64,000 nucleotides of DNA, from positions 186,001 to 250,000 of the forward strand of contig NW_025767351.1 of the NCBI RefSeq assembly GCF_003918875.1, in the 5' to 3' direction. Source of the stretch: Haliotis rubra (taxonomy: Eukaryota). The notes under the pieces were generated by a model that worked only from the letters and a program-made list of their open reading frames with translations, was not told the origin of the DNA and ran no database searches. Shown here in pieces: positions 23,713 to 46,666 of this stretch. A program made the translations under genes and the position numbers. Within the stretch, counting starts at the first letter, position 1. The number at the start of each line of letters is the position of its first letter.

Positions 23713-23780
23713 ATGAACTCGGACATCGAAGACTCGGTCCACAGCACCGGACATCGGCTCGTCATACATGTGGATTACTG
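23713..23780 (+). CDS. MIEN1: Rdx-family selenoprotein (MIEN1/SELENOW2-like), coding exon 1: MNSDIEDSVHSTGHRLVIHVDY-C(split)
   Basis: ATG in aaagtcATGa context; VIHVDYC resembles the Rdx beta1 strand (IxVEYC); ends TG|gtcagt (phase 2), completing Cys with the next exon; acceptor gtttgctgcag at ~23671 with an open frame upstream of the ATG. Confidence 0.8.
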
Positions 23781-25429
23781 GTCAGTTGAATTTCGTTGTT
23801 GAACGTTGAGTTGTCAGGTACCCAGTTAACTGTTACGTCGCTTTTACAGTTAGACCCTCGAACAATAACTGAATAATACCTACACATTTGAAAACACTTT
23901 ATGTTTGCGGAATGAAATAAATGACACGAAATAGGTTCATCAGAAAGTGAAGTAGTACCTTCAGCCGTGGAATGCTTACAAAAATCATCTGAAGGCAATT
24001 TGTGTTTTTTCAAAACATGAAGCATAAATGATCTTATGTTTTGTCGTGCACTGACTATGAATTTTGTAAGAAAGGTTCATTCGCCTCGCATTTTGACTAT
24101 ATACGAAAGTTGGGGTTCAAGTCACATTAACCCATTATTTTCATTCTATCACATTTAAAATCGCATGGCAGGAACTTGTATGTCAGAGGTAGTTCTGTTG
24201 TAGTTGTGGTGTTGTTCGTAGCGAGCTGTATCATGTGTTCAGGAAATATGACAAGGGGATTTAGTGATGCCCATATATTTTTGTTCTGAAATAACCAAAT
24301 GCTAATGGTATATGAAGATACACCCGTAACAACTATAATCACCAGTCCTTCCTGTGTACTTTATAATCATATATGTAACATTACTGTGATGGTATTTTTA
24401 TAAATGTTTTAGCTATCAAGAAAAATCTGTGGAAATGTTGTTGCATCCTTTGAAGCAGAGGAAGTTAGGACAGAGTTAAAGGTGGTCATATACATACTGC
24501 CAGGAAATATGAAATGTTTACGGCACAATTGGGGTTTTGATTTTCAGTATGTATGTAACTTGTAAGCAATAACAAATGTCGGGGTTTTTTTCCAGTATGC
24601 ATATCTATAATGTCAATTGAATATCGGAATATCTAGTAAGCAGTCTTTTTTCAAGGTAGATACATAAAGGTATATGACTGACGACACAAGTGCTAATGAC
24701 AATCATGAACACCAAAGCAAAAGCTGCGTGTCGATTATAAATAATTGTAATATACTTCTGGACAAGTGTCATATCTGGAAATGGTTTCTTCTCAGCAAGT
24801 CCTATGCTATCAATAGGATCTGCGTTTCATCTGAATAGCAGTCAGTACGGCAAATCACATACGCCAACTATTCCCAACGAACATAGAGAATCTTCAAATC
24901 TGTATTTTCTTACCGCGGATCCTTTTTAATACGAAGTCAATGTTTCAATGCCTGCAGTTATTTCGTCAAGTAAAATAAAACCTTTCAACAGTGGGTAATT
25001 GAGCTTCTAAACCGGATTATCCTTAACACTCACCAAACACATCCCACACGCACAGGAGATCAATTAAGTACGCGTTTACAAATTAGATTATATAGGTCCA
25101 AATCAAGGCCGATATTGAAATGTTCCAATGTGTCCGTGTTGACCATTAGGCGGTAAGGGTAAATTGTGTTCTGGTACAGAGCCACGTAGTGCAGCACGGT
25201 CCACGTGTGTGTATTGTGTGTGTATAGGGACTGTATTGCCATGGGGCATAGTAGCATTAACTCTGTAATGGCCATGTTGGCTAGCTGTATATCAACATTA
25301 ACTTGTGTTCGGGTCGTCTTGTCAAGTAGTATATCAACATTGACGTGTGTTAGGTCCTTGCTGGCAAGTAGTATGTTAACATTATCTAGTGTAACGACTT
25401 TTTCTGACCAAGAAGTATGTTGACATTAA

Positions 25430-27050
25430 AGTGTTGCCAAGAAGTATGTTAACGCTAAGGTGTTTAATGGCAGTGTTGCCAAGAGTATTAACATTAAAGT
25501 CTTGCCAAGAAGTATGTTAACATTAAAGTGTTGCCAAGAAGTATGTTAACATCAAGGTGTGTACTTGAGGTGTTACAGGAAGTATTTTAACATTAACGTG
25601 TTGCCAAGAAGCATATCAACATTAACGAGTTGCCATGAAGTATATTAACAATAACGTGTTGCCAAGAAGCATATCAACATTAACGTGTTGCAAAGAAGTA
25701 TATTAACAATAACGTGTTGCCAAGAAGTATATCAACAGGAACGTGTTGACAAGAAGTATTTTAACATTAACGTGTTGACAAGAAATATATTAACATAAAC
25801 GTGTTGCCATGAAGTATATTAACAATAACGTGTTGACAAGAAGTATATTAACAATAATGTGTTGCCATGAAGTATATTAACATTAACGTGTTGCCAAGAA
25901 GCATATCAACATTAACGTGTTGCAAAGAAGAATATTAACAATAACGTGTTGCCAAGAAGTATATCAACAAGAACGTGTTGACAAGAAGTATTTTAACATT
26001 AACGTGTTGACAAGAAATATATTAACATAAACGTGTTGCCATGAAGTATATTAACAATAACGTGTTGACAAGAAGTATATTAACAATAATGTGTTGCCAT
26101 GAAGTATATTAACATTAACGTGTTGCCAAGAAGTATATCAACATTAACGAGTTGCCATGAAGTATATTAACAATAACGTGTTGCCAAGAAGTATATCAAC
26201 ATTAACGTGTTGACAAGAAGTATATTTACAATAACGTGCTGACAAGAAGTATATCAACATTAACGTGTTGACAAGAAGTATATTAACAATAACGTGTTGA
26301 CAAGAAGTATATTAACATTAACGTGTTGACAAGAAGTATATCAACATTAACGTGTTGACAAGAAATATATCAACATTAACGTGTTAACAAGAAGTATATC
26401 AACATGAACGTGTTGACAAGAAGTATTTTAACAATAACGTGTTGCCAAGAAGCATATCAACATTAACGAGTTGCCTTGAAGTATATTAACAATGACGTGT
26501 TGCCATGAAGTATATCAACATTAACGTGTTGACAAGAAGTATATTAACAATAACGTGCTGACAAGAAGTATATCAACATTAACGTGTTGACAAGAAGTAT
26601 ATTAACAATAACGTGTTGACAAGAAGTATATCAACAAGAACGTGTTGACAAGAAGTATATTAACATTAACGAGTTGCCAAAAAGTATTTTAACATTAAGG
26701 TGTGTAATGGCCGAGTTGCCAAGAAGTGTATTCTCATTAACCTGTTTGCCAAGAAGTGTATTAACATTCAAGTGTGTAATGGCCGTATTGAGAAGTAGTA
26801 TATTAACATTAAAGTGAGTAATGGCCGTATTGAGAAGTAGTATATTAAGATTAATGTGTGTAATGGCCGTATTGAGAAGTAGTATATTAACATTAAAGTG
26901 TGTACTTGAGGTGTTGCAAGGAGAGTATTAACATTAACGTATTAACATTAAAGTATATCAACTTTAAGATGTGTAATGGCTATATTGAGAAGTAGTATAT
27001 TAATTTAAAATGTGTATTTTAGGTATTGCAAGAAGTATATCAATATTAAC
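25430..27050. repeat. 29-bp minisatellite with degenerate edges
   Basis: Unit aacgtgttgacaagaagtatattaacaat. Confidence 0.95.
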
Positions 27051-28129
27051 TCACCAACATAAAGATAGCAAGTCCTTCCACCCCATCATATAGTATATAT
27101 TACTATCTGATTCATTGACTGTTATCAAATATTGCCATTCCGGTTGTCTCGAACATCAAATCTTGAGGTCTTTCCAGTGCCCCAAAATAGATCGAAGCAA
27201 CGAACATTTATTGTAGTGAATCACAGATTCTGTGGCAGTTCAAACTATCACTGTTGTAAGGAGCTCTATTCATGCAAACCGAGAACCCCTTTCCATCCAT
27301 GATGACTACATATTAAACAATTAACGGCCTTTTGTAGAATGTGAAACATCGTGATCATTCACCCTACAACTGAAACCCTTCATGTTTAAATAAGAATTAT
27401 TCATATGAAATTCCTACGCTAAACATTTTCACTTTGATCGAGCCTTATATAATTATGATTTACATTAAACGGTTTCCGATTACGAATCCCCTACAATGTG
27501 TGATGTTTGATCATATTAAATTGACGCTTGATTAAATAAAATTATGCTGTGCATGAAATGAATAACAACGTTACCGCAAATGGCTCATTATCTGGAGATT
27601 ACCTCGAGGTAGTATGAATATTAGAGCCTTGGCACATTGCAATTACACGTAATACTATTTTAATTATGTTTGCACACAATTGGAAATCAATGTGCTAAAC
27701 ACTTAAATCCTTTCGTTCTTCTGAACTATTTTTGTCATTTTCGAGGAGCTATCCAGGATGCCAACGTGCTTTGATAAAGAATATAGAGCTTGGCAGTATG
27801 GTAATAATCGCCATTAGTGTGTTTTCAGTCGTAAATGTTAGTGCATTGATGCTTGAAAACTATATTGACAAATAGAATTAGTCCGTGTGTTCCACTTCAC
27901 AGCTGCTGATTCATGGACAAAGAACATTACACTTAATGGCATAAATATTGAGAGGAAAGAAGTGACAAAAATATATCTGATGTGAGATACGTTGTAATAA
28001 GGTTCTAATAAAGAATCATAAAATGTAGGTAAATATAGAACGTCACATCCAAAGAAAACCTCTTTGTGTTATCCGACGAAACTGATTTCATGTGGGTGTA
28101 CAGGACAAACTAGCGGTGAAAATTATATT

Positions 28130-28800
28130 CATTTTGTTCTTTACTTAACACGTGTACGGATATGCCTAACTTCACAAATAACGACACTATTTGCAGATGT
28201 ATTATTTTCTTTATTTAACATGTGTACGGGTATGCCTAACTTCACAAATAACGACACTATTTGCAGATGTATTATTTTCTTTACTTAACATGTGTACGGG
28301 TTTGCCTAACTTCACAAATAACGACACTATTTGCAGATGTATTATTTTCTTTACTTAACATGTGTACGGGTATGCCTAACTTCACAAATACCTACACTAT
28401 TTGCAGATTATTATTTTTTTTACTTAACATGTGTACGGGTATGCCTAACTTCACAAATAGCTACTTTATTTGCAGATGTATTATTTTCTTTACTTAACAT
28501 GTGTACGGATATGCCTAACTTCACAAATAACGACACTATTTGCAGATGTATTATTTTCTTTACTTAACATGTGTACGGGTTTGCCTAACTTCACAAATAA
28601 CGACACTATTTGCAGATACAGATATTATTGTCTTTATAACACATGTGTATGAGCAAGCCCAACTTCAGACAAAACTACACTATTTACAGATGTATTATTA
28701 TGTTTAACACACGTGTACAAATATGCCTAAATTCACAAATACTAGTGACTACACTATTTGCAGATGCATTATTTTCTTTATTACACATGTGTATGAGAAT
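28130..28800. repeat. 70-bp tandem repeat, ~7 good and 2 diverged copies
   Basis: Period 70 (28141, 28211, 28281, 28351). Confidence 0.95.
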
Positions 28801-29000
28801 GCCAAATTTTACTCAAAACTATGCTATTTGCAAAAGAATTGTCTCCTTTATCAAAAGGTGTAAGGATATACCTAATTTACTAATATCTATGCTATGTTAC
28901 ATGTAAGTGCTGATGTGTCTCACTTTACTTACTGCTGCACTATATGAAAAAGTATTATCTTCTTCATTACATATATGTGTGGGTTTTCGTAACATTACTT

Positions 29001-29289
29001 GTAGTACATACGTCTTATCCTCTATATACAGATAAGTAAAATACCTGATAAGTAAACAATTTTGGCGAGTCCCTTGAAATTTTACTTATCAGGTTTCCAC
29101 TGTACTACATTCAGTCAAACATGGTTATGACGAAGTTGAAGGAACCTGCGTAAATACTTCGAGTTATCCGAGGTTTAATACTAACAAACATGGTAAATAA
29201 GTAAGGAATACGCATAAAAATCTGCTTTTACTTCGACACAACCGTGTGTTCGACACATCAGAAATTCGATACAACAATGTTGGACAGTA
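29001..29289. mobile_element. Two adjacent degraded pogo/Tigger-like MITEs
   Basis: End caggtttccactgta; pair cagtcaaacatggttatgacgaa / ttcgatacaacaatgttggacagta. Confidence 0.5.
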
Positions 29290-29308
29290 CATTAACATCT
29301 CCCCTCAG

Positions 29309-29409
29309 CTACGTGTGACCGGACTACAGCCAGATGTTCACGGAGCTGAAGCTGGCTGTGTTGTCGAAGTTCCCGACAGCTGACGTCTCCGGGACCTACT
29401 CCGTTAAAG
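29309..29409 (+). CDS. MIEN1: Selenoprotein exon 2: (C)YVUPDYSQMFTELKLAVLSKFPTADVSGTYSVK; in-frame TGA (Sec) at 29316-29318
   Basis: ctcccctcag| acceptor, aag|gtaact donor, phase 2 to phase 1; CxxU motif followed by the Rdx helix and FP motif. Confidence 0.88.
29326..29359 (+). promoter_or_regulatory. Candidate Sec-redefinition (SRE-like) stem-loop 7 nt after the UGA
   Basis: ACAGCCAG pairs perfectly with CTGGCTGT; inner TTCA/TGAA. Confidence 0.5.
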
Positions 29410-29471
29410 GTAACTCACAAACTTCCTTCCTCGTTGTGCACAACACATTGATTAAGATTTCATTAGACATG

Positions 29472-29641
29472 AGTGAGTGAATGAGTGAATTTAGTTTTAC
29501 ACCGCTTTTAGCAATATTCCAGCATGATTAATGCGGGGGACACCACAAATGGACTTCAAACAGTGTACCAATGAGGGAACTCGAACCCGGGTCTTCGGCG
29601 TGACGAGCGAACGCTTTAACCACTAGGCTACCCCACCGCCC
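29472..29641 (-). mobile_element. SINE family 1 (TSD tagacatga)
   Basis: Family body, TSD. Confidence 0.9.
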
Positions 29642-31239
29642 ACTAGACATGAATATAATACATGTCACGACTAGATAAACTTAGAAGCAAGAGAAGATGT
29701 GTCAGCTGGTAGGTTAGCTATGCTATGATGTGTTGGTCATTCATTCATTCATTCATTCATTCCAGATGCTACATTATACATAAATGCAATAATGGATTGG
29801 GATGTCTGACTCGGTTTCATAGCGTGTCATGATAGCTCGGCGCCGCTTATAATGAGCGGTTTCCTTGTCCAAACTCGATTATTTACAGGCTGTTGTCGTA
29901 TATTTGGTTGAGTTCGGTGTTGGTTCTGTACCTTGTTAGCGCCATACCGTGCAGACAGATTGGTGCCAGTTAGGGATTTCTCCTTAAATGTTTAGTCTCA
30001 ATTATTCCGTCTTCAAACAGAGAAATCTTATTCTCTCCAAGCAATTCTCTGTTATTAATGCAATGCATAGTCAAGTTTACTCTAATTGTAATTTTCTTAT
30101 CAAGTTTGGCTTTCAAAGACATTTGTTTTAAATCCATTCCTGTTCCATAAACCCAAACCTCCTTCATTCTCAACCCTCCGCTTTTTCCTGCTGTTGAACA
30201 CAATTATTTGAGGATTGGAGAGACAACACATGAATATACTTGAATATTACATAGCTTTTCATAAATCGCCAGACCATGTACAATGAAGAACAAGGCAGGT
30301 GTTTTTGTTTTCTAAAAATCGTTATTCTATCATAAGCTCGCAACTTGATGACCTCGTAAATTGGACCACGCTGTAATCAGTTCTTCCCCATAGATGTCAA
30401 TGGAGATAAATGCTATGTTCCAACGATCTTCCAAACGTGAGTGATAAACAGCCATCGGCAATGGGAGAAAGTACACAAGTAATGGCCGTCAATGGTTTGA
30501 ATTTCTGAGAAAATTCAGAAAATATCAAACTTAACCCCCTGGTCATAAAATGGGCTCGTCTCACATTGCCGAGCTCGGAGCGTCTTCATGCTGTCATCAT
30601 TATCTAAATACGGGTAAATGCTTTTAAAGTTTGTAAATGTTATTCATATACTTTAGGCGGCGGTACATAATTTTGATATCTCGTAGAAGAAATAAACGAC
30701 TCGTGGTCCTTAGTTTTTGAAAACACGGTAGGGAGAATGTAAAGGAACTATGTGGACGGTCTTTTATAAACTAGTCATCAGGTTCCCAGCAAAATATATG
30801 GATTATTGATAACCCGCGGTGGTACCAATGACCTTATATCGTTATATGCATATTTAATGCTTACCTTGTCACAGACAAAAAAGGACAAACGGATATTGAA
30901 CATGTATTACATCTTTTCGGAGAGGTCCTTTAGTTCCTGGGATTGGTTTGTAAGTGCAAGATACTATACAATACTGCTCGGTCGAATTTAAAGATTTAGT
31001 GTATGACTATGATTAATCGGTCACGGCTGGCGGGTTAAGCAAAACACAGGCATCCAATTGTGTGAGTTCTTTAAATAACACGTCACAATTTAATTCTGGA
31101 CTCACAAAAGTCCAGAAACTCTCCGCACTGTGGGCACTTTCTGACAAGGGATTTGACCAAATTAAACATGCAGTTGTTATGAATATATGCCAAGGATGAA
31201 AAAATGAAAAAGATTTTTTTCGAAAACTTTAAATTTAAA

Positions 31240-34200
31240 CTCGCTCGCCCATGGACCGGCCCATGGGCGAACAGTGGCCCATGGGCGAGAATGTTTAATT
31301 TCGACCAGAATTCATGTTTTGGAGGTTGTAAATGAATGAGTGTATGTTTGTAAGCATCATGACACAAATTTCAACTCATTTTGACTTCATTCGTCTAATT
31401 TAGACCGATATTAAAAACTTTTACTCAAAATATATGTTTTTCCATGTTTTGGAGGTTGTAAATGAATGAGTGTATGTTTATAAGTATCATGAAACAAAAT
31501 TCAACTCACATTGACTTAATTCGACTAATTTAGAGCGATATTAAAAACATCTCGCCCATGGGCGAAAAACATTTTGGCCCATGGGCGAGAATATTGACTT
31601 TTACTCATAATACATGATTTTCCATGTTTTGGAAGTTGTAAATGAATGAGTGTATGTTTATAAGTATCATGAAACAAAAATTCAACTCACATATTGACTG
31701 AATTCGACTAATTTAGAGCGATATTAAAAATCTCGCCCATGGGCGAAAAACATTTTGGCCCATGGGCGAGAATATTTACTTTTACTCAAAATATATGTTT
31801 TTCCATGTTTTGGAGGTTGTAAATGAATGAGTGTATGTTTATAAGTATCATGAAACAAAATTCAACTCACATTGACTTAATTCGACTAACTTAGAGCGAT
31901 ATTAAAAAATCTCGCCCATGGGCGAAAGATAGGTTAGCCCATGGGCGAGAATATTTACTTTTACTCAAAATACATGATTTTCCATGTTTTGGAGGTTGTA
32001 AATGAATAAGTGTATGTTTATAAGTATCATGAAACAAAATTCAACTCACATTGACTGAATTCGATTAACTTAGAGCGATATTAAAAAATCTCGCCCATGG
32101 GCGAAAAACATTTTGGCCCATGGGCGAGAATAATGACTTTTACTCAAAGTATGTGTTTTTCATGTTTTGGAGGTTGTAAATGAATGAGTGTATGTTTATA
32201 AGTATCATGAAACAAAAATTCAACTCATATTGACTGAATTCGACTAATTTAGAGCGATATTAAAAAATCTCGCCCATGGGCGAAAAACATTTTGGCCCAT
32301 GGGCGAGAATATTGACTTTTACTCAAAATATATGTTTTTCCATGTTTTGGAGGTTGTAAATGAATGAGTGTATGTTTATAAGTATCATGAAACAAAATTC
32401 AACTCACATTGACTTAATTCGACTAACTTAGAGCGATATTAAAAAATCTCGCCCATGGGCGAAAGATAGGTTAGCCCATGGGCGAGAATATTTACTTTTA
32501 CTCAAAATACATGATTTTCCATGTTTTGGAAGTTGTAAATGAATGAGTGTATGTTTATAAGTATCATGAAATAAAATTCAACTCATATTGACTTAATTCG
32601 ACTAATTTAGACCGATATTAAAATCTCGCCCATGGGCGAAAAACATTTTGGCCCATGGGCGAGAATATTTACTTTTACTCAAAATATATGTTTTCCATGT
32701 TTTGGAGGCTGTAAATGAATGAGTGTATGTTTATAAGTATCATGAAACAAAATTCAACTCACATTGACTTAATTCGACTAACTTAGAGCGATATTAAAAA
32801 AATCTCGCCCATGGGCGAAAGATAGGTTGGCCCATGGGCGAGAATATTTACTTTTACTCAAAATACATGATTTTCCATGTTTTGGAGGTTGTAAATGAAT
32901 GAGTGTATGTTTATAAGTATCATGAAACAAAATTCAACTCACATTGACTGAATTCGACTAACTTAGAGCGATATTAAAAAATCTCGCCCATGGGCGAAAA
33001 ACATTTTGGCCCATGGGCGAGAATATTTACTTTTACTCAAAGTATGTGTTTTCATGTTTTGGAGGTTGTAAATGAATAAGTGTATGTTTATAAGTATCAT
33101 GAAACAAAATTCAACTCATATTGACTGAATTCGACTAATTTAGAGCGATATTAAAACATCGCCCATGGGCGAAAAAATTTTGGCCCATGGGCGAGAATAT
33201 TGACTTTTACTCATAATACATGATTTTCCATGTTTTGGAAGTTGTAAATGAATGAGTGTATGTTTATAAGCATCATGAAACAAAATTCAACTCATATTGA
33301 CTTAATTCGACTAATTTAGAGCGATATTAAAAATCTCGCCCATGGGCGAAAAACATTTTGGCCCATGGGCGAGAATATTTACTTTTACTCAAAATATATG
33401 TTTTCCATGTTTTGGAGGTTGTAAAAAAAATGAATGAGTGTATGTTTATAAGTATCATGAAACAAAATTCAACTCACATTGACTTAATTCTGACTAACTT
33501 AGAGCGATATTAAAATCTCGCCCATGGGCGAAAGATACAGTTGGCCCATGGGCGAGAATATTGACTTACTTTTACTTGAAACACATGATTTTCCATGTTT
33601 TGGAGGTTGTAAATGAATGAGTGTATGTTTATAAGTATCATGAAACAAAATTCAACTCACATTTGACTTCATTCGACTAATTTTAGAGCGATATTAAAAA
33701 ATCTCGCCCATGGGCGAAAAAACATTTTGGCCCATGGGCGAGAATATTTACTTTTACTCAAAATATATGTTTTTCCATGTTTTGGAGGTTGTAAATGAAT
33801 GAGTGTATGTTTATAAGTATCATGAAACAAAATTCAACTCACATTGACTTAATTCGACTAACTTAGAGCGATATTTAAAATCTCGCCCATGGGCGAAAAG
33901 ATAGGTTGGCCCATGGGCGAGAAATATTTACTTTACTCAAAAATACATGATTTTCCATGTTTTGGAGGTTGTAAATGAATGAGTGTATGTTTATAAGTAT
34001 CATGAAACAAAATTCAACTCACATTGACTTAATTCGACTAATTTAGAGCGATATTAAAAATCTCGCCCATGGGCGAAAAACATTTTGGCCCATGGGCGAG
34101 AATATTGACTTTACTCAAAATATATGTTTTTCCATGTTTTGGAGGTTGTAAATGAATGAGTGTATGTTTATAAGTATCATGAAACAAAATTCAACTCACA

Positions 34201-35050
34201 TTGACTTAATTCGACTAACTTAGAGCGATATTAAAAAATCTCGCCCATGGGCGAAAAACATTTTGGCCCATGGGCGAGAATAATGACTTTTACTCAAAGT
34301 ATGTGTTTTTCATGTTTTGGAGGTTGTAAATGAATAAGTGTATGTTTATAAGTATCATGAAACAAAATTCAACTCATATTGACTGAATTCGACTAATTTA
34401 GAGCGATATTAAAAAAATCTCGCCCATGGGCGAAAAACATTTTGGCCCATGGGCGAGAATATTGACTTTTACTCATAATACATGATTTTCCATGTTTTGG
34501 AAGTTGTAAATGAATGAGTGTATGTTTATAAGTATCATGAAATAAAATTCAACTCATATTGACTGAATTCGACTAATTTAGACCGATATTAAAAAATCTC
34601 GCCCATGGGCGAAAAACATTTTGGCCCATGGGCGAGAATATTTACTTTTACTCAAAATATATGTTTTTCCATGTTTTGGAGGTTGTAAATGAATGAGTGT
34701 ATGTTTATAAGTATCATGAAACAAAATTCAACTCACATTGACTTAATTCGACTAACTTTAGAGCGATATTAAAAAATCTCGCCCATGGGCGAAAGATATA
34801 GATTGGCCCATGGGCGAGAATATTTACTTTTACTCAAAAATACATGATTTTCCATGTTTTGGAGGTTGTAAATGAATGAGTGTATGTTTATAAGTATCAT
34901 GAAACAAAATTCAACTCACATTGACTTAATTCGACTAACTTAGAGCGATATTAAAAAATCTCGCCCATGGGCGAAAAACATTTTGGCCCATGGGTGAGAA
35001 TAATGACTTTTACTCAAAATACATGATTTTACTCAAAATACATGATTTTT
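31240..35050. repeat. ~180-bp satellite, ~21 monomers, each with paired gcccatgggc palindromes
   Basis: Seen directly. Confidence 0.97.
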
Positions 35051-35454
35051 CATGTCGGTGTTATTGGCCACAGCCAGAAGCCGACGTTAAACTCATAATC
35101 ATCATCATATGTAGTCACTAGGCACTTAAAACATTAGAAGTAATGCCATGAAATGTGTCTCGTCAATGGTATGCGTGTACGAACAGATAATATCAAAACA
35201 TACACGTCAGAACAGTCAAAATTAAGAAATTGTTGAATATGAAATATTGTTAATTTAATTGTTTTGAGTGATATATATGGAACATAAGCGTGGCAAATCA
35301 CAGGTTATCACATACAGGAAAACTACCTTTATGATGAATTCTTCTTGAAACGAACTGACTGATTTTAGGAACTGTTGGTTTTCGACATTTTTTTGTCCAG
35401 CAGAAGTAGTGTAGATTTTGGTAGAAATGCACATAACGAGATTCTCCAACGTCT

Positions 35455-36150
35455 TTTTTTGTACGCTTCGGAAATATGGGGTTTTCGGAAATGGCATGTT
35501 ATTGAACAGTTTCAAATCAGATTTTGTAAGTATGTGTTGGGCGTAAGTTATACATGCTCTAACGCTGCTGTATTGGCGGAATGTGGTAGAAATTATATTT
35601 ATGTTGATAGTTTATTACGTGTTATGAAGTATTGGTTCAAACTTTTACGCTTACCAAAGGATAGAAACCCAAAGCAGTGCTATATTATGTTGCACAATTT
35701 AGACAAAGTTGGTAGGAAAACGTGGGTATATTTTGTCCGAAATACTTTGTTCAATTATGGTTTTGGTTTTGTGTGGGAAGCTCAAGGAGTTGGCAACGAG
35801 GAACAATTTTTGAAAGATTTTCATGTAAGAGTTGGTGATTGTCAGAAGCAATTCATATTTTCAGAAATGCACAAATGTTCATCACTTGATGTCTATTCCA
35901 GTATCAAAAGTGTATTTTGCATTGAGCCATATTTAACTTTATTGAAATCTAAAAATGCGAGGCGTCGAATAACAATGTTACGAATCGGTGCACTTCAATA
36001 TATAAAAATACCGGCAGATTTGATGGCGTTCCGAGGCACCAAAGACTATGTAATATTTGTAATGATAATTTTGTAGAAAATGAATTTCATTTCCTATTTG
36101 AATGTAAAAGTTTATCATGATTTGCGCTATAAGTATTTTAAAGCATTACC
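35455..36150 (+). mobile_element. RTEX-like LINE ORF2 3' fragment
   Basis: LYASEIWGF..IEQFQIRFCKYVLGV..SNAAVLAECGR..MKYWFKLL; ENEFHFLFEC; absent from the paralogous site ~39695. Confidence 0.8.
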
Positions 36151-37129
36151 AAATTACCTGGACATTTAATTGAATCATCCATCCAACCTTTTTGTACCCA
36201 GGATGTTTAACTGTATCGAATTCGTCACAGATCATCTCCCGATACATCGTCTGCTGCAACGTTGATCCTTGTTCAGTTATCGATTCCTTCTTGAACGCCA
36301 AATACCACACAACGCACCGTTGGTGGGTCGAAGGTTCAGTGCCATCAACACAAAGGAGTGTTTATAACCAAACCATCCCAGTCCCGACACATTCAATCCA
36401 ATGACACCATTTATTCCATTTTGAACAATTGCTTTTAGTACTTGCAAATCAATACGTTATTTGGTGGTCACTGGTCATGCAATAAAACTGATTACAGGAG
36501 ATAACGGTGTTTACCGAGCAGTTGTCTGTAGGCAGGACTGGCAGTCCGGACACTGCAATAACATTAGCAATGTTCCGTGCATTATCTTTGAGGCAGAAAC
36601 ATTACACTTAATCTACTCGAACGGCGTCTCTCTAGGACCGTAATGCGGTTCCAGCGACAATGTTGGGATTGTTTTAGCGATGTGTTGTTGCATCTATGTT
36701 TGTTAACAAAACAGTTTGTTAGGAAAACACGTAGACTAATGCATTTGCACTGTTGATGATGGTAAACATGGCCGTATATGATGGCATCTGTTGACATATA
36801 TCTTGTTATTCTCTCGAGGATCGGGGACAAGGTACGCATAATGGAGAAAAAACTGAGTGCATTGTACGTTGTGCAATCTGTCCAGGGTTGGTTATATTGG
36901 TTCTCGGGGAACGGTGAAACACTGGTTTGTTGTATTTGTTGCGAGTTTGATCCTTCAACAATCGGCACTCGTGGGTGTCACAGACTTGTAAACGTCAAAG
37001 ACATTGTTAACATAGTCATGTTTGCCTATCCTCAGACGTTAAACGCAGTACACCCACTCCTTATCCTGTGTGCTTGTGCAACTGAAAATATAAATTTGTT
37101 CTTTGGAATTTTTTAAAGTTTTGATTTGC

Positions 37130-37340
37130 CTGTTGTTTTAACGGCACACACTACAAAAGTATAGCTAATATGACTGCGGTCTGTAGTTAATCGAGTCTGG
37201 ACAAGGTAATCTAGAGATTGACATCATGAGCATCGATCTACGCGTTAGGGATATGATGACATGCATCAACCAATCCCCTTAGTCGAATCTTACGACAATC
37301 ACGGGTTACTGAAGACCATTTCTAACCTGGATCTGTACGG
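37130..37340 (-). mobile_element. Family 2 copy (in duplicated block 1)
   Basis: Reverse complement of the family head and body. Confidence 0.75.
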
Positions 37341-38104
37341 CTATTGATAACTTTTGAACATGTAATGATAAATTTCTCACATGTGTCAAAAGTCCGTGTG
37401 CGCCACAATTACCGATTGTTGAAAGGCATACAAACCCTAACCCTCTATGTAACCTGTTGCCCTGCATCGTACTACTGCTTAAACATTTCTGAAATTAAAA
37501 GCATAATCACCTCTTCGATGAGTCTTTTTATCAGTGGGTATTGGTTAACCTCTCCAAATATCCCGTGCAATTACATGAACTTGTATCGACTCATTTCCAT
37601 CATGCAGCATAATTCTGACCATGCGTCGATACGTCCTAACTCTCTAACATTAGACAACTTTACTGTCTCTGAGGATAGTTGAGACTGGGTATTTTGCATT
37701 GGCCTCTATATTTAATTAAAAGCGAAAACGACAAAACCGTAAGAAATTTCTGCAAAAGTCCATTTTGCGATTCCGACTTCATTGTAATCATTATCAAATA
37801 CTAGTAGTGATGATATAAGCTGTTCGCGAAGAGGTAAGCGTATCCTGCCTCACCGGTGACAACCCTTATGAATGCATGCAAAGACAAGTCAAGTAGGCAA
37901 TGATCAAACACCGGAACGTAAGGTAGAAGTAAAACAAGAACATTGCATCAGAACTCATTCGGAAATGTGCCCCATATGGCTACCATAAAACCTTTGGAAA
38001 GCTCTTCTAAAGGTTTGAATGTTGTAACCCAGGCGAGGAAACGCTTCAGCAATAGTCGTATGACGCAATATGAAGTTTTGGTAGAAAGAGCATGCTCGAA
38101 TGTA

Positions 38105-38479
38105 CAGCTTGTTCAGCTTGACCTGATCAAGTGAATACTAATGCATTGCGTGACCGTGTCACAACTGGTTGGGTCTATTAGTGTGAAGGGGTGCACCTTT
38201 GTCAGTCGATTGTCAACATGTCCGAACAGCCGAGACAAGGTAGCCGTTTGATATCTCAGTGTCGAGAAATAGTCAGCAATGTCCTAACTTTCTTTAAACT
38301 TGAAAAAGAAGCTACATATGGTTTAATGTTTCCGATTCGGGCTTTTAGGCAGCGAGCAGCAATATTAATAACATTCTCTGCTCCCCTATTTAATGAAGTT
38401 AACTCGACCTGCCGTTTGTGCCATTTGACCTCCCGGGTCATGCATATGTAGAGTAGCTCGGGTCAAGCTGAACAAGCTG
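38105..38479 (+). mobile_element. Internally deleted IS630-Tc1-mariner element
   Basis: 19-bp TIR cagcttgttcagcttgacc after TA; ORF remnant GSRLISQCREIVSNVLTFFKLEKE resembles ITm transposase N-termini. Confidence 0.65.
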
Positions 38480-40613
38480 GTAAACACGGCGTATTGCTCG
38501 ACAGGAATGGAAACTTGACTGTTGAGACACTGACCGCATCTATTTTGGTGGTCTAGTGGATAGAATGTCTGCTTGAAGGGTGGAAGACGCTGAAAAATAG
38601 TACTCGTTGTTCTACCATGAGGTCACTTCATCAGTTCGCAACTTGATGACATCATAAATTGGACGACGCTATATTGTTGTCAGTTCTTCCCCATAGATGC
38701 AGATAAATGCTATGTTAGAGCGAACGCTCACGCGTGGGTGATAAATAGCCATCGGTAATGGGAGAAAAGATACCGATAATGGCCGTCAATGGTTTGTATT
38801 TCTGGGAAAATTCAGAAAATACTGAACTTACCCCGCTATAAATGGATTCGTCTCACTTTGCCGAGCTTGGAGCGTCTTCATGCTGTCATCATTATCTAAA
38901 TACGGGTAAATGTTTTTGAAGCTTGCAAATGTTATTGATATCCTTTAAACGGCGGTACATAATGTTGATATCTCGTAGAAGAAATAAACGACTCGTGGTC
39001 TTTGGTTATTGAAAACACGATAGGGAGAATATAAACAGACATATATGTAGATGGCGTTCCCGACAAAATATATAGATTATTGATAACCCGCTGTGACACC
39101 AATGACCTTATATCGTAATATGCATATTTAATACTTACATATCACAGACAAGAGTTCAACCAAATAGGGAACGTGTGTTACATGTTTTCGGAGAGCGCCT
39201 GTAGCTGTTAGTATTGGTTTGTAAGTGCAGGATACTATATACTACTCGAAACAAGTTAAAGAACACGGTGGTGTATGTATGACTATGATTCATGTGTCAT
39301 GGCTAGTCGATATTGCAACACACGCTACCAGTTGTGTGAGTTCCATCTTTTCGGAGAGGTCCTTTAGTTCCTGGGATTGGTTTGTAAGTGCAAGATACTA
39401 TACAATACTGCTCAGCGAATGTAAAGATTTAGTGTATGACTATGATTAATCCGTCACGGCTGGCGGGTTAAGCAAAACACAGGCATCCAATTGTGTGAGT
39501 TCCTTAAATTGTTTTGAGTGGTATATATAGTACATAAGCGTGGCAAGTGACAGGTTATTACCAAACAGTAAACTACTTTTATGACGAACACTCTTGTAAC
39601 AAACTGACTGATTTTAGGAACTGTTGGTTTGGGCGGGGTCTTTTTTGGCCCGAAGACTTAATGTAGATTTTAACAAAACATGTATGAGATTCCAGAAAGC
39701 CTGGTCATTAATTGAATCATCTATCCAACCTTTTTGCACCCAGGATGTTTAACTGTATCGAATTCGTCACAGATCATCTCCCGATACATCGTCTGCTGCA
39801 ACGTTGATCCTTGTTCAGTTATCGATTCCTTCTTGAACGCCAAATACCACACAACGCACCGTTGGTGGGTCGAAGGTTCAGTGCCATCAACACAAAATAG
39901 TGTTTGTAACCAAACCATCCCAGTCCCGACACATTCAATCCAATGACACCATTTATTCCATTTGGAACAATTGCTTTTAGTACTTGCAAATCAATACGTT
40001 ATTTGGTGGTCACTGGTCATGCAATAAAACTGATTACAGGAGATAACGGTGTTTACCGAGCAGTTGTCTGTAGGCAGGACTGGCAGTCCGGACACTGCAA
40101 TAACATTAGCAATGTTCCGTGCATTATCTTTGAGGCAGAAACATTACACTTAATCTACTCGAACGGCGTCTCTCTAGGACCGTAATGCGGTTCCAGCGAC
40201 AATGTTGGGATTGTTTTAGCGATGTGTTGTTGCATCTATGTTTGTTAACAAAACAGTTTGTTAGGAAAACACGTAGACTAATGCATTTGCACTGTTGATG
40301 ATGGTAAACATGGCCGTATATGATGGCATCTGTTGACATATATCTTGTTATTCTCTCGAGGATCGGGGACAAGGTACGCATAATGGAGAAAAAACTGAGT
40401 GCATTGTACGTTGTGCAATCTGTCCAGGGTTGGTTATATTGGTTCTCGGGGAACGGTGAAACACTGGTTTGTTGTATTTGTTGCGAGTTTGATCCTTCAA
40501 CACTTGTCTCTTGGGTGTCACAGACTTGTAAACGTCAAAGACATCGTTAACATGTTTGCCTCTCATGTGACGTTACACGCAATACACCCACTCCTTATCC
40601 TGTGTGGGGCAAT

Positions 40614-40768
40614 GGGGCGGTGGGTAGCCTAGTGGTTAAAGAGTTCGCTCGTCACGCCGAAGAGCCGGGCTCGATTCCCCACATGGGTACAAATATGTGA
40701 AGCCCATTTCTGGTGATGTTGCTGGAATATTGCTAAAAGCGGTGTAAAACCACACTCACTCATTCACT
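40614..40768 (+). mobile_element. SINE family 1
   Basis: Family body; absent from the paralogous site near 37070. Confidence 0.88.
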
Positions 40769-40829
40769 TACCCTGTGTGCAAGTGCGACACAAAATATAT
40801 ATTTGTACGTTGGTTGGCTTTAGTTTTGC

Positions 40830-41306
40830 TTGTTGTTTTCACGGGAAACACTGCAATATTCCAGCTATGACGGCTGCCTGTAGTTCATCGAGCCTGGACA
40901 AGACAATACAGTGATTGACATCATGAGCATCGACCGAGGCATAAGTATGGAATCCGAGAAGGGACACTGACCACCCATTAGTCGTCTCATTGTCGACCCT
41001 CTCAAAACAAATAAAATGAGGTCCAAAATAGAGCCAAGGTCTCAGCGATCCCCGACATCGCGACAATGCGACAAATGGCCTAATGTCGCGTTGTCGCGAT
41101 GTCGATTGTCGGCCAGAGTTTGGTTAATTTTGCCTCATTTTTACTTGTATTTGAGAGGGTGACAACGCGACAATGCGACAACGCGACAATGTCCCTTCCA
41201 GGATTCCATACATAAGCGATACGATGACTTGCATCAACCAACCTGACCACCCATTAGTCGTCTCTTACGACAAGCGTGGGTTACAAGCTAAGCCGGATTT
41301 CCACGG
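40830..41306 (-). mobile_element. Family 2 copy (in duplicated block 2), interrupted by a MITE
   Basis: Reverse complement of the family head and body. Confidence 0.75.
40946..41210. mobile_element. IS3EU-type MITE (TATGG...CCATA, 6-bp TSD cataag)
   Basis: TIR tatggaatcc..gaagggaca; TSD at 40940-40945 and 41211-41216; internal gcgacaa repeats; palindromic body. Confidence 0.75.
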
Positions 41307-41754
41307 CTATAGGTAACTTTTGAACATGTGATGATAAATCTGTTACATGTGTCAAGAATATCGATGGTCGAAAGGTATACAAACCTGAATTCCCATAAGT
41401 CATATTTAACTTGATGTCCCGCAACGTAATACTGTTTAAATATTTCTGAAAGAAACAGCATAAACTCACTCACTCATCCATCTGACCATGCGTCGCTCTA
41501 CCTCTCTGCCATTAGACTGCTTTACTGCCTCTGAAGAGAGTCAATGCTTGGTATTCCTTTGCACTAGCCATCTTTGTTTAAATAAAAGCATTTCAGACAA
41601 AATCCTACGAAATCCCTGCTAAAGACTCTGCACAGTATTTTACTGGTGCTTTTATCATTTGGGTCATTGTTTCATAGGTTTTCTGTATGATATGTTGATA
41701 GGCTTTGATTCGTCATGACAACTGATACTTTAAGTTTCCTTTGCATCACATTCT

Positions 41755-41952
41755 CGTGTTTACATATACAGATATTGAAGCACACGTGTTTACATATACA
41801 GATATTGAAGCACACGTGTTTACATATACAGATATTGAAGCACACGTGTTTACATGTACAGATATTGAAGTAAACGTGTTTACATATACAGATATTGAAG
41901 CACACGTGTTTACATATACAGATATTGAAGCACACGTGTTTACATATACAGA
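41755..41952. repeat. 30-bp minisatellite, ~6.5 copies
   Basis: Unit tacatatacagatattgaagcacacgtgtt. Confidence 0.95.
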
Positions 41953-42271
41953 AGGATGTTAATAAGTCAAATATCTTCATATTAAAGTGAGTGAGTGACT
42001 ATGCTTTTGCACCGCTGTTAGCAATACTCCATGATAGAACCACTAGGCTGCCCCACCGTCCCCTTCATATAATAGGGGAGACTGGTAACCTAGTCATCTA
42101 CAGCACAGCAGTTCAATTCGCTGTTGAGAATTGCACAAGACACCTGTGATCAAGTGTTCGAATCTCAGTCCGTCCTGATAATAAGCCGAATCTTGTCAGC
42201 ACCGTACCCTTGCTCATGGATTTTACCGAAGTGGTAAAAAGCTACATCACGTGGACCTTTCATCCAACACA

Positions 42272-42423
42272 GGGCGGTGGGGTAGCCCAGTAGTTAAAGC
42301 ATTCGCTCGCCGCGCCGAAGGCCCAGGTTCGATTCCCCACATGGGTACAATGTGTGAAGCCCATTTCTGGTGTCCCCCGATGTGATATTGCTAAAAGCGG
42401 CGTAAAACTAAACTCACTCACTC
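42272..42423 (+). mobile_element. SINE family 1 (TSD tccaacaca)
   Basis: Family body, TSD. Confidence 0.9.
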
Positions 42424-42486
42424 GTCCAACACAAAGTGACAAGCCGTGATATGACTTGAATATTGTTCAACATGAGGTCAAACAAT

Positions 42487-42813
42487 ACTCACCCCTATCT
42501 ACTCACTCCTATCTACTCACCCCTATCTACTCACTCCTATCTACCCACCCCTATCTACCCACCCCTATCTACTCACCCCTATCTGGGGCGGTGGGGTAGC
42601 CTAATGGTTAAAGCGTTGGCTCGTCACGCCGAAGACCCGGGTTCGAATCCCCACATGGGCACAATGTGTGAAGCCCATTTCTGGTGTCCCCCGCCGTGAT
42701 GTTGCTGGAATATTGCTAAAAGCGGCGTAAAACCAAACTCAGTCAGTCAGTCAGTCACCCCTATCTACTCACTCCTATCTACTCACCCCTATCTACCCAC
42801 TCCTATCTACTCA
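42487..42813. repeat. 14-bp minisatellite (ctatctactcaccc) split by a SINE
   Basis: Seen directly. Confidence 0.9.
42585..42754 (+). mobile_element. SINE family 1 inserted in a 14-bp minisatellite
   Basis: Full length, flanked by tcacccctatct. Confidence 0.9.
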
Positions 42814-43548
42814 TTGCTATTAATCTATGGAGCCGGGTTATTGTTGATTTTAAGATACATTCACACCCCTTCCCCCAAAATGAAAGAACCTTTATGTCTG
42901 GCTTCTCTGTGCCATATATATCTGCTGAAGTGTTTCTGTCGAAGAACACACGATTCTTTCATAATATTATTGATAATCTGTCCTCTAGGTATCTCCTTAA
43001 TTCCAAATCTAAATGTGCTTTTCCGCAAACAGAAATATACTCCTGGTTCATAGCTCTTGGCATTTCTTTGTAACAGTATCTGAAATCCTGCTGATCTTTG
43101 TGAAACGGAGCATGGTATTTTGTGATTTATAATCGTCTCGTTTCAGATTACTTTTTATCGAAATAACTCGAAATGGAATTGGTTTAGTGCTGTAGAGGCC
43201 GGATTAATAGATCGTGTGGTTAGGCGTACTGCAATATGTCAATCATTCCGTATATGGTCAACTGAATCACAGGTCGCCCACATAAATATACTGATGTGCA
43301 GAAAAAACTATACACTTGTTTGAGACTGGCTGCATAAAACACAACTAAGAAACGGTTATTGGATGGTGATGTATGTAACATGGTTATCATGGCTGTGCTT
43401 TGGAACTTATATTTATCATGAATAGGCGACTGATTTCGGCCAAGTAACGTTTAGGTAATGATTGGAAACTGTTGGTCAAAATTCATTTTGAGAGTACACT
43501 TTCTTTTGCCTAGCAGTGTAACTTTAAAAGTGGTGATTTTGGCTTTAT

Positions 43549-43711
43549 GAATGACTGACTGACTGACTGACTGACTGAGTTTGGTTTACGCCGCTTTTAG
43601 CAATATTCCAGCAACATCACGGCGGGGGACACCAGAAATGGGCTTCACACATTGTACCCATGAGGGAATTCGAACCCGGGTCTTCGGCGTGACGAGCCAA
43701 CGCTTTAACCG
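43549..43711 (-). mobile_element. SINE family 1, (tcag)n subfamily
   Basis: Family body. Confidence 0.88.
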
Positions 43712-43800
43712 GCTGTATGAATGAATATTTATCCATATAGAGATCAATAAACCGCGTTGCTATGATTACCAAAACGTATTTACATCTTTTTGTACTTCAG

Positions 43801-43877
43801 ATTCTTTTGAAGTCTTCTCGAATGGCTACCTGATACACTCAAAGCTGGAGATGGGAAGCATGCCACAGATCAAACAG
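43801..43877 (+). CDS. MIEN1: Selenoprotein exon 3: (D)SFEVFSNGYLIHSKLEMGSMPQIKQ
   Basis: tttttgtacttcag| acceptor, cag|gtaatg donor; matches the Rdx signature FEVxxNGxLIHSKLExGxxP. Confidence 0.9.
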
Positions 43878-44004
43878 GTAATGTAAACTTCACACCTGTA
43901 CCTGACACAGTTCGTCCTCGCGACAGCTAAATTCACAAAAACATATTGCAATTATTGTCAAATCGGAAGTGTCCAAATGATTATTTTAAGCAGGTAAAAT
44001 TATA

Positions 44005-44166
44005 ACTGACCGAGTTTGGTTTACGCCGCTTTTAGCAATATTCCAGCAACATCACGGCGGGGGACACCAGAAATGGGCTTCACACATTGTACCCATGTGG
44101 GGATTCGAACCCGGGTCTTCGGCGTGACGAGCCAACGCTTTTACCATTAGGCTACCCCACCGCCCC
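44005..44166 (-). mobile_element. SINE family 1 (TSD aaattataa)
   Basis: Family body, TSD. Confidence 0.9.
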
Positions 44167-44401
44167 TCAAATTATAAGGTCCTAGTACTTAGTCACTCAG
44201 GTAATAGCATAAGGATGTCAACATTTCATTTTGAAGTTTTGAGAAACGTTCTGCGCACACATGGACCAGCTTAAATATATGCACGGGGGGATTACAGAGT
44301 TGCAGAAGCCGTAACCGATTATACAAATACTGCCTTGTACATGTTCGGTGCCAATAGTTATGTTTACCTAAATAATATCTTCCTTTCTTACATGCATCAT
44401 A

Positions 44402-44620
44402 GACCCATCCATGAAGATCCGGGTTAGACTTCAGCAAAAATGCTTGTCGAAAGACACGACTAACGGGATCGGGTGGTCAGGCTCGATGACTTGGTTGACA
44501 CATGCTATCGAATCCCAGTTGTGTAGATCGATGCTCATACTCACTGGATTGTCTGGTCCGATTATTTACAGACCGCCGCCATATAGCTGGAATATTGCGG
44601 CGTTTAACAAACAAACAAAA
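44402..44620 (+). mobile_element. Family 2 copy
   Basis: Head, body and (aaac)n tail. Confidence 0.85.
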
Positions 44621-45349
44621 TTGCATCATGGCCAAGGGCGTGCGATCTTCTCTTAAAAAAATCTTTTCTTTATTTTCATCGAAATATAATCAATGCCATG
44701 TTGGGATCTCAAAATCTTAATTTGTTTTGCTGAGCTTTTTATTTTCTCACATGACGGTGAATGGTATTTCGTAACAAATAATTAAACACTGGTTGTGAAT
44801 CTGGTAGAATCCTTGGTCCAAAACATCTTGGTAAAGTATGAAACGCTGTTGTAGTGGTAACGAGGAATCTTTTCACGTCGGTACATTTCCTACATTCCCA
44901 GTTGAATCCTGTTGTCCATCAACACGTTTACAGTTAATTACCAGTATTGTGTACTGAACTGGCACGAAAACAAGAAAGGGTAGCAACTTCCTGGTTAATC
45001 TAACAACAGCCCAGCGCCATATTGGTCTCAGGAAGCGCCGAAAATTTATACACAATCTCAGAGTCTGTTGATCTCACTGACATTAAGAAATAATATTCGT
45101 GACAGGATCGTGTACAGGAGATAGACTTCATCTTCGGTGTCTATTTACAAGCCCCGTCTAGACTTCGTAATTAAGGCTCCGTGTGAATTTGACGCATTGT
45201 ATCAGTGTAATTAGGACACTCTGTAATTGTTGGAATACACAAGATCGATAAAAGGATAGCAGAGGGGTCAATTATTGCTTGAATTGCCCGAGTCAAAACA
45301 TACTTTTCCTCTGTTAATTTCCATTAATCAGTAGTCGAATCATTTCCAG

Positions 45350-45430
45350 GTGATGGCCGATATTGAAGCAGATAGTCATGGAGATTCCAACAAATATGGA
45401 AAGAAGTCATCACTGTGTGCAATTTTGTAA
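45350..45430 (+). CDS. MIEN1: Selenoprotein exon 4: VMADIEADSHGDSNKYGKKSSLCAIL* (CaaX prenylation box)
   Basis: catttccag| acceptor in phase 0; ends CAIL-TAA, like the CVIL terminus of MIEN1. Confidence 0.85.
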   Translation: MMADIEADSHGDSNKYGKKSSLCAIL

Positions 45431-45707
45431 CATTACCTTCATCCGAATCCTGTCTGTGATATTTCTCACACGAAGTTGTGCATTTAGATCTGAACAATGA
45501 ATAAAAGAAACCCATCTAAAGATAACCAACATCGCCCATCGATTCCCATGGACTGAAATGTCGATGGTGTCGGACAATCGTAAGTCCGAATTGGTGGAGA
45601 TGATTAAGAAAGCATCAAGTCTGCAACCAGATGTCATTTTCACCCCCCACAGATGTTCTATCATCAACAAGATTGTTTCGTGCTGCTGTGCTTGAGAATG
45701 GGCTTAA

Positions 45708-45767
45708 GAAGTCTAGATGACGGAGCATCTCCAAATGCGTGGCTGAGATGATCTTGACGGAGACTTC
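45708..45767 (+). promoter_or_regulatory. Eukaryotic SECIS element in the selenoprotein 3'UTR
   Basis: Lower stem GAAGTCT/AGACTTC; ATGA core at 45717-45720; upper stem GGAGCATCTC/GAGATGATCT (one mismatch); apical AAA; 3' TGAC; ~280 nt after the stop. Confidence 0.85.
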
Positions 45768-45943
45768 CTCACAGCACCAGGAAACACTTAGCCTTACTTC
45801 ATTCTAGACTTTCAATGGCTTTTTGTCCAAAGTGGAATTTATCGTGTACAACTCTTTATATAAAGTATCCAGGGAAAAACGTATGTGCATCATGCTATTA
45901 TTCTTTCCATTCCAATATATGCTTAATCTTTTGAGAGTAGATT

Positions 45944-46172
45944 TCGTGAAGATCCAGGTTAGGATTGGTCTTCAGCAATACATGCGTGTCGCAAAAGGCG
46001 ACTAACTGGATCGGGTGGTCAGGCTCGCTGACTTGGTTGACACATGTCATCGTATCCCAATTGCGTTGAGCGATGATCACGGTATTGATCACTGGATTGT
46101 CTGGTCCAGACTCGATTATTTACAGACCGCCGCCATATAGCTGGAACATTGCTGAGTGCAAAGTTAAACAAT
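45944..46172 (+). mobile_element. Family 2 copy, near full length
   Basis: Head tgaagatcc..ggtcttcagc..gtcg..ggcgactaa; body; tail. Confidence 0.85.
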
Positions 46173-46522
46173 AATCATTGGACTTTTTTCACCGTCATGG
46201 CTATGTACGGCATCCTTTTCTCACAGGGCAATTTAAACCTGTCAGTGTTGTATATTGCATCATGGCAGACTGCATAAATTCTCTTTTCCATTCCTTGATA
46301 AGGTCAATACTCCGTGTGTGAATTATTGGTGAGCTCTCATAACATCAACACAAAACTAATTGAAAGACATCACCACTTCACTAGTGTAAGAACATGGTGT
46401 AATTTACAACCCACCTTCACAGCAGAACCATATCCCAACACATTTCACCGTAATAAGAACTTGAACTTGTATGTAGAGTGTCGATTTCAGGCATGCAAGC
46501 AGATAAGTTTCGTTATATTGCA

Positions 46523-46666
46523 GGGCGGTGGGGTAGCCTAGTGGTTAAAGCGTTCGCTCGTCACGCCGAAGACCCAGGTTCGATTCCCCACATGGGTACA
46601 ATGTGTGAAGCCCATTTCTGGTGTCCCTGGTCGTGATATTGCTGGAATATTGCTACTCACTCACTC
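46523..46666 (+). mobile_element. SINE family 1 (TSD tcgttatattgca)
   Basis: Family body, TSD. Confidence 0.9.

Follow-up and report, generated by a model that had tools for sequence, protein, structure and literature searches.

The subject of this analysis is a gene of the abalone Haliotis rubra, which occupies positions 23713 to 45767 of a 64,000-nucleotide stretch of contig NW_025767351.1 (hereafter the window; all positions refer to it). We found that this gene is very probably a real, expressed and functional selenoprotein gene of the SELENOW2/MIEN1 group, which is split into four coding exons and is present in its selenocysteine (Sec) form. Standard annotation overlooks the gene because its Sec codon resembles a stop codon. 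An earlier inspection of the bare letters (the sequence-only reading) had proposed at this place a Sec-encoding, CaaX-ended Rdx gene of the SelW2/MIEN1 type that is hidden from annotation based on open reading frames (ORFs). This proposal is supported by the match to the Rdx profile, by the match to MIEN1, by the alignment of the TGA with the Sec column of related proteins, by RNA data and by the lack of a protein record. The gene involves the following elements:

Positions 23713–23780, + strand: coding exon 1 (68 nt), which starts with the ATG, encodes the N-terminal tail as well as strand beta-1 (..L-V-I-H-V-D-Y) and breaks off after the second base of a Cys codon, with a GT donor.
Positions 29309–29409, + strand: coding exon 2 (101 nt), which completes this Cys codon with its third base and continues with Y-V, the Sec codon and helix alpha-1, with an AG acceptor and a GT donor.
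Positions 29316–29318, + strand: Sec TGA (codon 26) of the C-x-x-U redox motif, which aligns with the Sec/Cys column of relatives.
Positions 43801–43877, + strand: coding exon 3 (77 nt), which carries the S-F-E-V ... H-S-K-L-E core of the Rdx domain.
Positions 45350–45430, + strand: coding exon 4 (78 nt plus the TAA stop), which carries the end of helix alpha-2, the flexible K-rich tail and the CaaX box C-A-I-L.
Positions 45416–45427, + strand: CaaX box C-A-I-L at the C-terminus of the predicted protein.
Positions 45431–45708, + strand: 3' untranslated region (3' UTR) upstream of the candidate for a selenocysteine insertion sequence (SECIS), including an AATAAA at 45500–45505 that is read through by some transcripts at least.
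Positions 45709–45766, + strand: SECIS candidate with helix I, the AUGA/UGA quartet, a helix II of about 11 positions and AAA in the apical loop.

The four exons, the splice sites, the phases (2/1/0), the 108 codons and the sole TGA at 29316 were all found exactly where the sequence-only reading had placed them. The three introns (5.5, 14.4 and 1.5 kb) follow the GT..AG rule and have pyrimidine-rich acceptors. When the exons are joined, the frame of 108 codons is interrupted by a single internal stop, the TGA at 29316–29318. The codons of the motif are GAT TAC TG|C TAC GTG TGA (D-Y-C-Y-V-U), in which intron 1 splits the Cys codon. A G is located at position −3 of the start ATG and an in-frame stop lies upstream at 23638–40. 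At its other end, the predicted protein terminates with K-x-G-K-K-S-S-L-C-A-I-L. The gene is spread over 22 kb because its introns are filled with repeats, among them minisatellites, satellites and high-copy elements.

Family membership was explored with the 82 residues that follow the Sec codon in the spliced frame; this query was checked by alignment to the three exon translations. Here, we found that the Pfam profile Rdx (PF10262) matched this piece with 35 bits (E 1.7e-8), which is above the curated cut-off of 22.6 bits, so that the profile check suggested by the sequence-only reading came out positive. In this alignment, residues 3–62 of the piece correspond to profile positions 12–73 of 74, and gapless extrapolation puts the TGA on profile position 9 and the Cys of the motif on position 6. 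The invariant Rdx positions F-E, S-K and P are retained downstream of the TGA. When the exons were searched singly, exon 3 (25 residues) matched Pfam Rdx and no other family (E 0.0028, 18.3 bits), and exons 1, 2 and 4 gave no Pfam match. Among the PDB sequences, the sole match of the 82-residue piece was 2LJK, human MIEN1 (E 7.2e-5, gapless over 64 residues). The same entry, listed as 'Protein C17orf37', was the sole match of exon 3 alone, and no PDB match was obtained with exon 2 alone. An AlphaFold model of the post-Sec piece predicted the element order H-E-E-E-H-H (pLDDT 75.6), with strand beta-1 being absent from the query, and a disordered tail (pLDDT <50 for residues 75–82 of the piece). 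When Foldseek was run with this model, 2LJK was the top match (TMq 0.54, prob 0.82), followed by bacterial SelW-related proteins with TM values of about 0.5. None of the Foldseek matches reached E ≤0.001, which is not surprising since the query is a short domain that lacks strand beta-1.

An HMMER scan of 1.84 billion cluster representatives (E ≤0.001) yielded 20 related proteins, 18 of which were fetched and scanned, and all 18 turned out to be Rdx proteins according to Pfam. Those that carry names include MIEN1 of the bedbug Cimex, a MIEN1-like protein of the ray Mobula, 'Selenoprotein W, 2b' of the catfish Pangasianodon and Rdx proteins of the tick Amblyomma and of Fasciola. Two of the relatives are unusually built: P0002 (888 aa) and P0010 (400 aa) contain 10 and 4 tandem Rdx-like stretches, respectively, and these are either multi-Rdx repeat proteins or artefacts of assembly or annotation. 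When we compared eight family members with the six reading frames of the window by tblastn, significant matches were confined to two exons, with E-values ranging from 3e-7 to 3e-3 for exon 2 and from 6e-7 to 3e-2 for exon 3, and the best exon 2 alignment (P0001, E 3e-7) crosses the TGA. A second Rdx copy was not found in the window by this search. The placement in the SELENOW2/MIEN1 subgroup is suggested by best hits.

The sequence-only reading had named a TGA outside the Sec/Cys column as an observation that would speak against a selenoprotein. From the alignment, it can be seen that the abalone TGA falls on the column that holds the second Cys of CGTC/CRAC in Cimex and Fasciola. Several unannotated relatives show a 'W' in this column. 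For one of them (L003) we could follow the translation back to its nucleotides, and here the 'W' corresponds to a TGA, so that the protein is a C-G-A-U form, which ends with the CaaX box CSIM. Thus, the abalone TGA aligns either with another TGA or with Cys. CaaX-like C-termini are present in 13 of the 18 relatives, and Sec forms are among them; the catfish protein (P0004) ends with CVIS. The combination of Sec and CaaX box is therefore a normal pairing in this group and not a peculiarity of the abalone gene. We did not find any product of the abalone gene, whole or truncated, in a collection of 5.8 billion proteins. The queries for this search were exon 3 with read-through into the intron, the 82-residue piece, and this piece combined with P0001; none of them returned anything beyond P0001 itself.

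Exons 2 to 4 of the gene are transcribed and spliced. Three RNA-type runs (X1–X3) were available as Logan contigs, the depth of which was about 2.6. In all three, the depth was zero where intron 3 is free of repeats (44616–45250). In run X5, by contrast, the coverage of this segment was about 60-fold, and this run evidently contains DNA from an individual or a species that has diverged to some extent. An X1 contig of 189 nt can be divided into 82, 76 and 31 letters. The 82 leading letters have no match in the searched stretch, contig positions 83–158 align with 43799–43874, and the 31 trailing letters are made up of the last 3 letters of exon 3 and 28 letters of exon 4 that extend to 45377. 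Consistently, the depth bin 45251–45377 contains about 29 letters at the depth of this contig, none being present at this depth past 45377, and RNA contigs start at 45350 and 45357. The junction 43877/45350, for which the sequence-only reading had called for RNA data, is thus matched to the base by the length of the X1 contig, as judged from length arithmetic. For exon 2 together with 60 nt of either flanking intron, the RNA runs X1, X3 and X20 contained 3–4 of 23 sampled words, about 8 of which are expected inside the exon. DNA runs of four other organism labels contained 13–35% of these words, which is about the share of the exon in this stretch, and this suggests that exon 2 is conserved inside diverged introns across these runs. 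The X5 allele differs by a synonymous change at 45376 and by a His-to-Leu exchange at 45378 in the C-terminal tail, and both differences also occur in an X3 RNA contig.

Next to a SECIS candidate that has its core motifs, there are several observations that weigh against the selenoprotein reading or against parts of it. The sequence-only reading had described a complete SECIS element at 45708–45767. All core motifs of such an element are present: helix I is formed by AAGUCU/AGACUU, AUGA (45717–20) is separated by 12 nt from the AAA (45733–35), the UGA is located at 45754–56 and helix II involves nine standard pairs as well as C·U and G·A mismatches. The Rfam model SECIS_1 could be aligned over its full length (model positions 1–64) at 45709–45766 with 14.8 bits (E 1.7 in a 101-nt search). 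This E-value refers to 101 nt multiplied by 4227 families; according to our own calculation, it corresponds to about 4e-4 for a single family and to about 2e-3 for one strand of a 1-kb 3' UTR. We consider the match genuine but not strong evidence. The reservations concern its score and its inclusion in the mRNA. The score is far below the Rfam gathering score of 35, the element was not reported when the whole window was searched at the gathering threshold or when 1.3 kb (45300–46600) were searched at E ≤10, and its fold is no more stable than that of shuffled sequences (z −0.43). RNA contigs end at 45536, 45573 and 45632; they extend past the AATAAA at 45500, but even the one that reaches furthest leaves a gap of 76 nt to the element. 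This canonical signal at 45500–45505 lies upstream of the SECIS candidate, and past the candidate the next one does not occur before 47566. A loose SECIS pattern was found at about 40 loci on the two strands (128 kb in total), many of them in the 179-bp satellite, and was dropped as too unspecific. At the opposite end of the gene, no RNA support was obtained for exon 1 and for the 23780/29309 junction, the RNA contigs covering exons 2–4. Finally, the redox center itself is atypical. The abalone protein has C-Y-V-U-P-D-Y in place of the usual C-G-x-U-G-Y, with a one-residue insertion and without the Gly residues.

Some of these observations can be compared with the nearest relative, protein P0001, which is encoded by Logan contig SRR31406944_28778 (L001). 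It shares the (C/U)-Y-V-U center and the one-residue insertion, and it is 36% identical to the abalone protein in a gapless alignment after the motif. The residues H-[VI]-[DE]-Y-(C/U)-Y-V-U are conserved between abalone exons 1/2 and L001, and exon 1 is supported because the H-[VI]-[DE]-Y preceding the motif is part of this conservation. The 3' UTR of L001 also involves a full-length SECIS_1 match (728–795, 68 nt past the stop), which scores 16.1 bits. Since this score is similarly low, low SECIS_1 scores seem to be typical of this clade. Two additional data sets bear on the candidate hairpin. Run X8 contains a fraction of 0.48 of the words. According to our own calculation, this fraction should be 0.43 if the SECIS is not covered and 0.54 if it is, and the run therefore favors neither alternative. 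The X5 DNA allele carries deletions of 15 nt and 2 nt (at 45693 and 45709) at the 5' foot of helix I, which shorten this helix to about 5 bp; among the differences listed for this allele, none affects the part from the AUGA through the 3' strand of helix I. We also found an 'SRE-like' hairpin with an 8-bp stem behind the Sec UGA (29326–29359), but the 72-nt stretch that contains it was no more stable than shuffled sequences (z −0.93).

If translation did end at the TGA, we would be dealing with a decaying pseudogene or with a gene for a peptide of no more than 25 residues, and the downstream frame would be a relic. The atypical center would fit this scenario. However, the 82 codons past the TGA have remained open over three exons with matching phases, they match Rdx above the cut-off and they have kept F-E, S-K, P and the CaaX box. 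Moreover, exons 2–4 are transcribed and spliced, words of exon 2 recur in DNA runs of other organism labels at about the share of the exon alone, and L001 has a TGA in the same column and a SECIS. We therefore regard this scenario as most improbable. Alternatively, the gene may be real and Sec-using but may rely on another SECIS, with the 3' UTR being spliced or longer than assumed. The subthreshold Rfam score of the 45709–45766 hairpin, its position outside the RNA contigs and its insignificant folding energy would be explained in this way. On the other hand, AUGA, the 12-nt spacing, AAA and UGA are all in register, neither the 45300–46600 search (E ≤10) nor the 101-nt search returned any other SECIS_1 match, the hairpin is the sole plus-strand match of the loose pattern from the stop codon to 50300 and the SECIS of L001 scores just as low. 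This alternative is slightly easier to accept than a true stop but it is still highly unlikely.

A third possibility leaves the selenoprotein intact but concerns its localization. The protein might be soluble with the terminal C-A-I-L remaining unprenylated, so that describing it as membrane-anchored would be wrong. Prenylation of the abalone protein is argued by analogy, and some family members (P0009, P0014, P0017) do not have the box. In contrast, the Cys at position −4 and the aliphatic residues have been kept in the 13 relatives with CaaX-like ends, which come from very different organisms, and human MIEN1 is geranylgeranylated at CVIL (PMC6738349). In addition, the tail is predicted to be disordered and, similar to Rho-type substrates, the box follows K-x-G-K-K. 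Among the three alternatives this one is the least improbable, although we consider it unlikely.

For the four-exon selenoprotein gene, established knowledge of selenoproteins and prenylated proteins suggests the following mechanism. The four small exons distributed over 22 kb would be spliced into an mRNA for a 108-residue selenoprotein of the thioredoxin-like Rdx family. When the ribosome meets the UGA at codon 26, the SECIS about 280 nt past the stop would recruit SBP2 and the Sec-specific elongation factor (eEFSec), so that Sec is inserted and termination does not take place. The C-Y-V-U redox center is predicted to lie between strand beta-1 and helix alpha-1, where it may form a selenenylsulfide as in SELENOW. 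The C-A-I-L that follows the lysine-rich flexible tail would constitute a CaaL box and would be geranylgeranylated by geranylgeranyltransferase type I (GGTase-I), as in human MIEN1. Most likely, the mature protein is a lipid-anchored thiol/selenol oxidoreductase at the cytosolic face of a membrane; for its membrane anchoring and enzyme activity, as for Sec insertion and SECIS function, we infer from what is established for related systems. Since two exon junctions separate the UGA from the last exon, the mRNA is likely to be sensitive to nonsense-mediated decay when selenium is scarce.

The redox center of L001 differs from that of the abalone protein at its first position. In the coding region of this contig (319–660), we read GAG TAC TGA TAC GTT TGA (E-Y-U-Y-V-U), with TGA at motif positions 1 and 4. 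The gene caller had read TGA as W in L001 and had extended the ORF upstream across a third TGA. L001 is a single mRNA-like contig from a single run and ends with CTLL. If its U-Y-V-U is real, it would constitute a diselenide-type motif on an Rdx scaffold. Since L001 originates from another sequencing run, the center is no abalone-only oddity, and a relative from another run that shares motif and insertion weakens the idea of the sequence-only reading that the gene may be a lineage-specific paralogue. The C-Y-V-U center and the two-Sec relative are the only pointers to something beyond an ordinary family member. On this basis, one might speculate that the abalone gene and L001, its only close relative, represent a divergent branch of SELENOW2-like proteins that has so far not been described, is prenylated and has a (C/U)-Y-V-U center, the first position of which switches between Cys and Sec. 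Some members, anchored to a membrane, would then have an intramolecular diselenide on their Rdx domain. Besides a canonical C-G-x-U SELENOW2, the abalone might possess the present copy as a paralogue. We consider this scenario possible but rather doubtful.

When compared with known systems, the abalone protein is predicted to share with MIEN1 (C17orf37, formerly Rdx12; 2LJK) the beta-alpha-beta-beta-beta-alpha Rdx domain, the loop that carries the redox motif and a flexible C-terminal tail. Both proteins also end with a CaaL box of the GGTase-I type, which is CVIL in the human and CAIL in the abalone protein (PMC6738349). In contrast, the motif of human MIEN1 is CxxC, so that a Cys occupies the Sec position, the human gene has no SECIS and the degree of identity is only about 30%. 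Compared with the human protein, the abalone protein probably carries an additional residue in the segment from the motif to helix alpha-1. Since MIEN1 proper originated from a duplication in the jawed vertebrates (PMC13134290), the abalone gene cannot be its one-to-one orthologue. According to the same vertebrate study of 2026, all invertebrate genes of the SELENOW2/MIEN1 group fall in the SELENOW2 branch, and Sec-form copies of MIEN1 occur in fishes (PMC13134290). SelW2 and its Cys relative Rdx12 (MIEN1) were defined by Mariotti et al. 2012 (PMC3316567), and SelW2-type genes have been described in flatworms, in Trichoplax and in the gastropod Lottia (PMC3828610). SELENOW2 of fishes, amphibians and invertebrates is a Sec-containing CxxU Rdx protein with a SECIS, as is predicted for the abalone protein, but it usually has C-G-x-U-G-Y where the abalone protein has C-Y-V-U-P-D-Y and one inserted residue. 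SELENOW (SelW1) and the bacterial SelW-like proteins are likewise members of PF10262 and would share the fold with the abalone protein, the bacterial structures being those with TM values of about 0.5. A eukaryotic SelW1 structure was not among the PDB sequences that matched the post-Sec piece at E ≤1. SelW1 is not known to carry a CaaX box. A UxxU diselenide arrangement has been described for selenoprotein L, which resembles L001 in having Sec at both motif positions. However, selenoprotein L is peroxiredoxin-like and not an Rdx protein, and the first position of the abalone motif is Cys (TG|C). Our literature search yielded nothing on SelW2 or MIEN1 of abalone or on run SRR31406944.

The surroundings of the gene are rich in repetitive DNA. 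A 50-bp minisatellite (21830–23637, 36 copies), the unit of which includes TTTCAGGTGAG, ends 76 nt upstream of the ATG and looks like an ordinary repeat rather than a series of splice sites. Intron 1 contains a 29-bp array with 39 copies and a 70-bp array with 9 copies (25570–26703; 28137–28793), and intron 2 contains the 179-bp satellite with 20 copies (31417–35030). The 3' end of the gene is flanked by repeats at 43981–44234, 44362–44615 and 45886–46266, the words of which reach depths of thousands to millions in every run. A tRNA-like element (46527–46595; Rfam tRNA, 20 bits) probably represents the head of a short interspersed nuclear element. Upstream of the gene, a retroelement is indicated by an intact ORF of 315 codons on the minus strand (17349–18296; RVT_1, E 6.5e-36), and ARAGORN called a tRNA-Thr-like sequence of 96 nt, also on the minus strand, at 20615–20710.

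Taken together, these data do not describe a new kind of system. Sec-form SELENOW2/MIEN1 proteins are known (PMC13134290, PMC3316567, PMC3828610), and what is new is the unannotated abalone gene. It adds a properly modeled selenoprotein to the abalone gene set and constitutes a further instance of the known failure of annotation at Sec-UGA codons (PMC12822975, PMC13134290). Since Sec forms outside the jawed vertebrates also carry the CaaX box known from the cancer-related MIEN1, prenylation probably predates the vertebrate SELENOW2/MIEN1 duplication.

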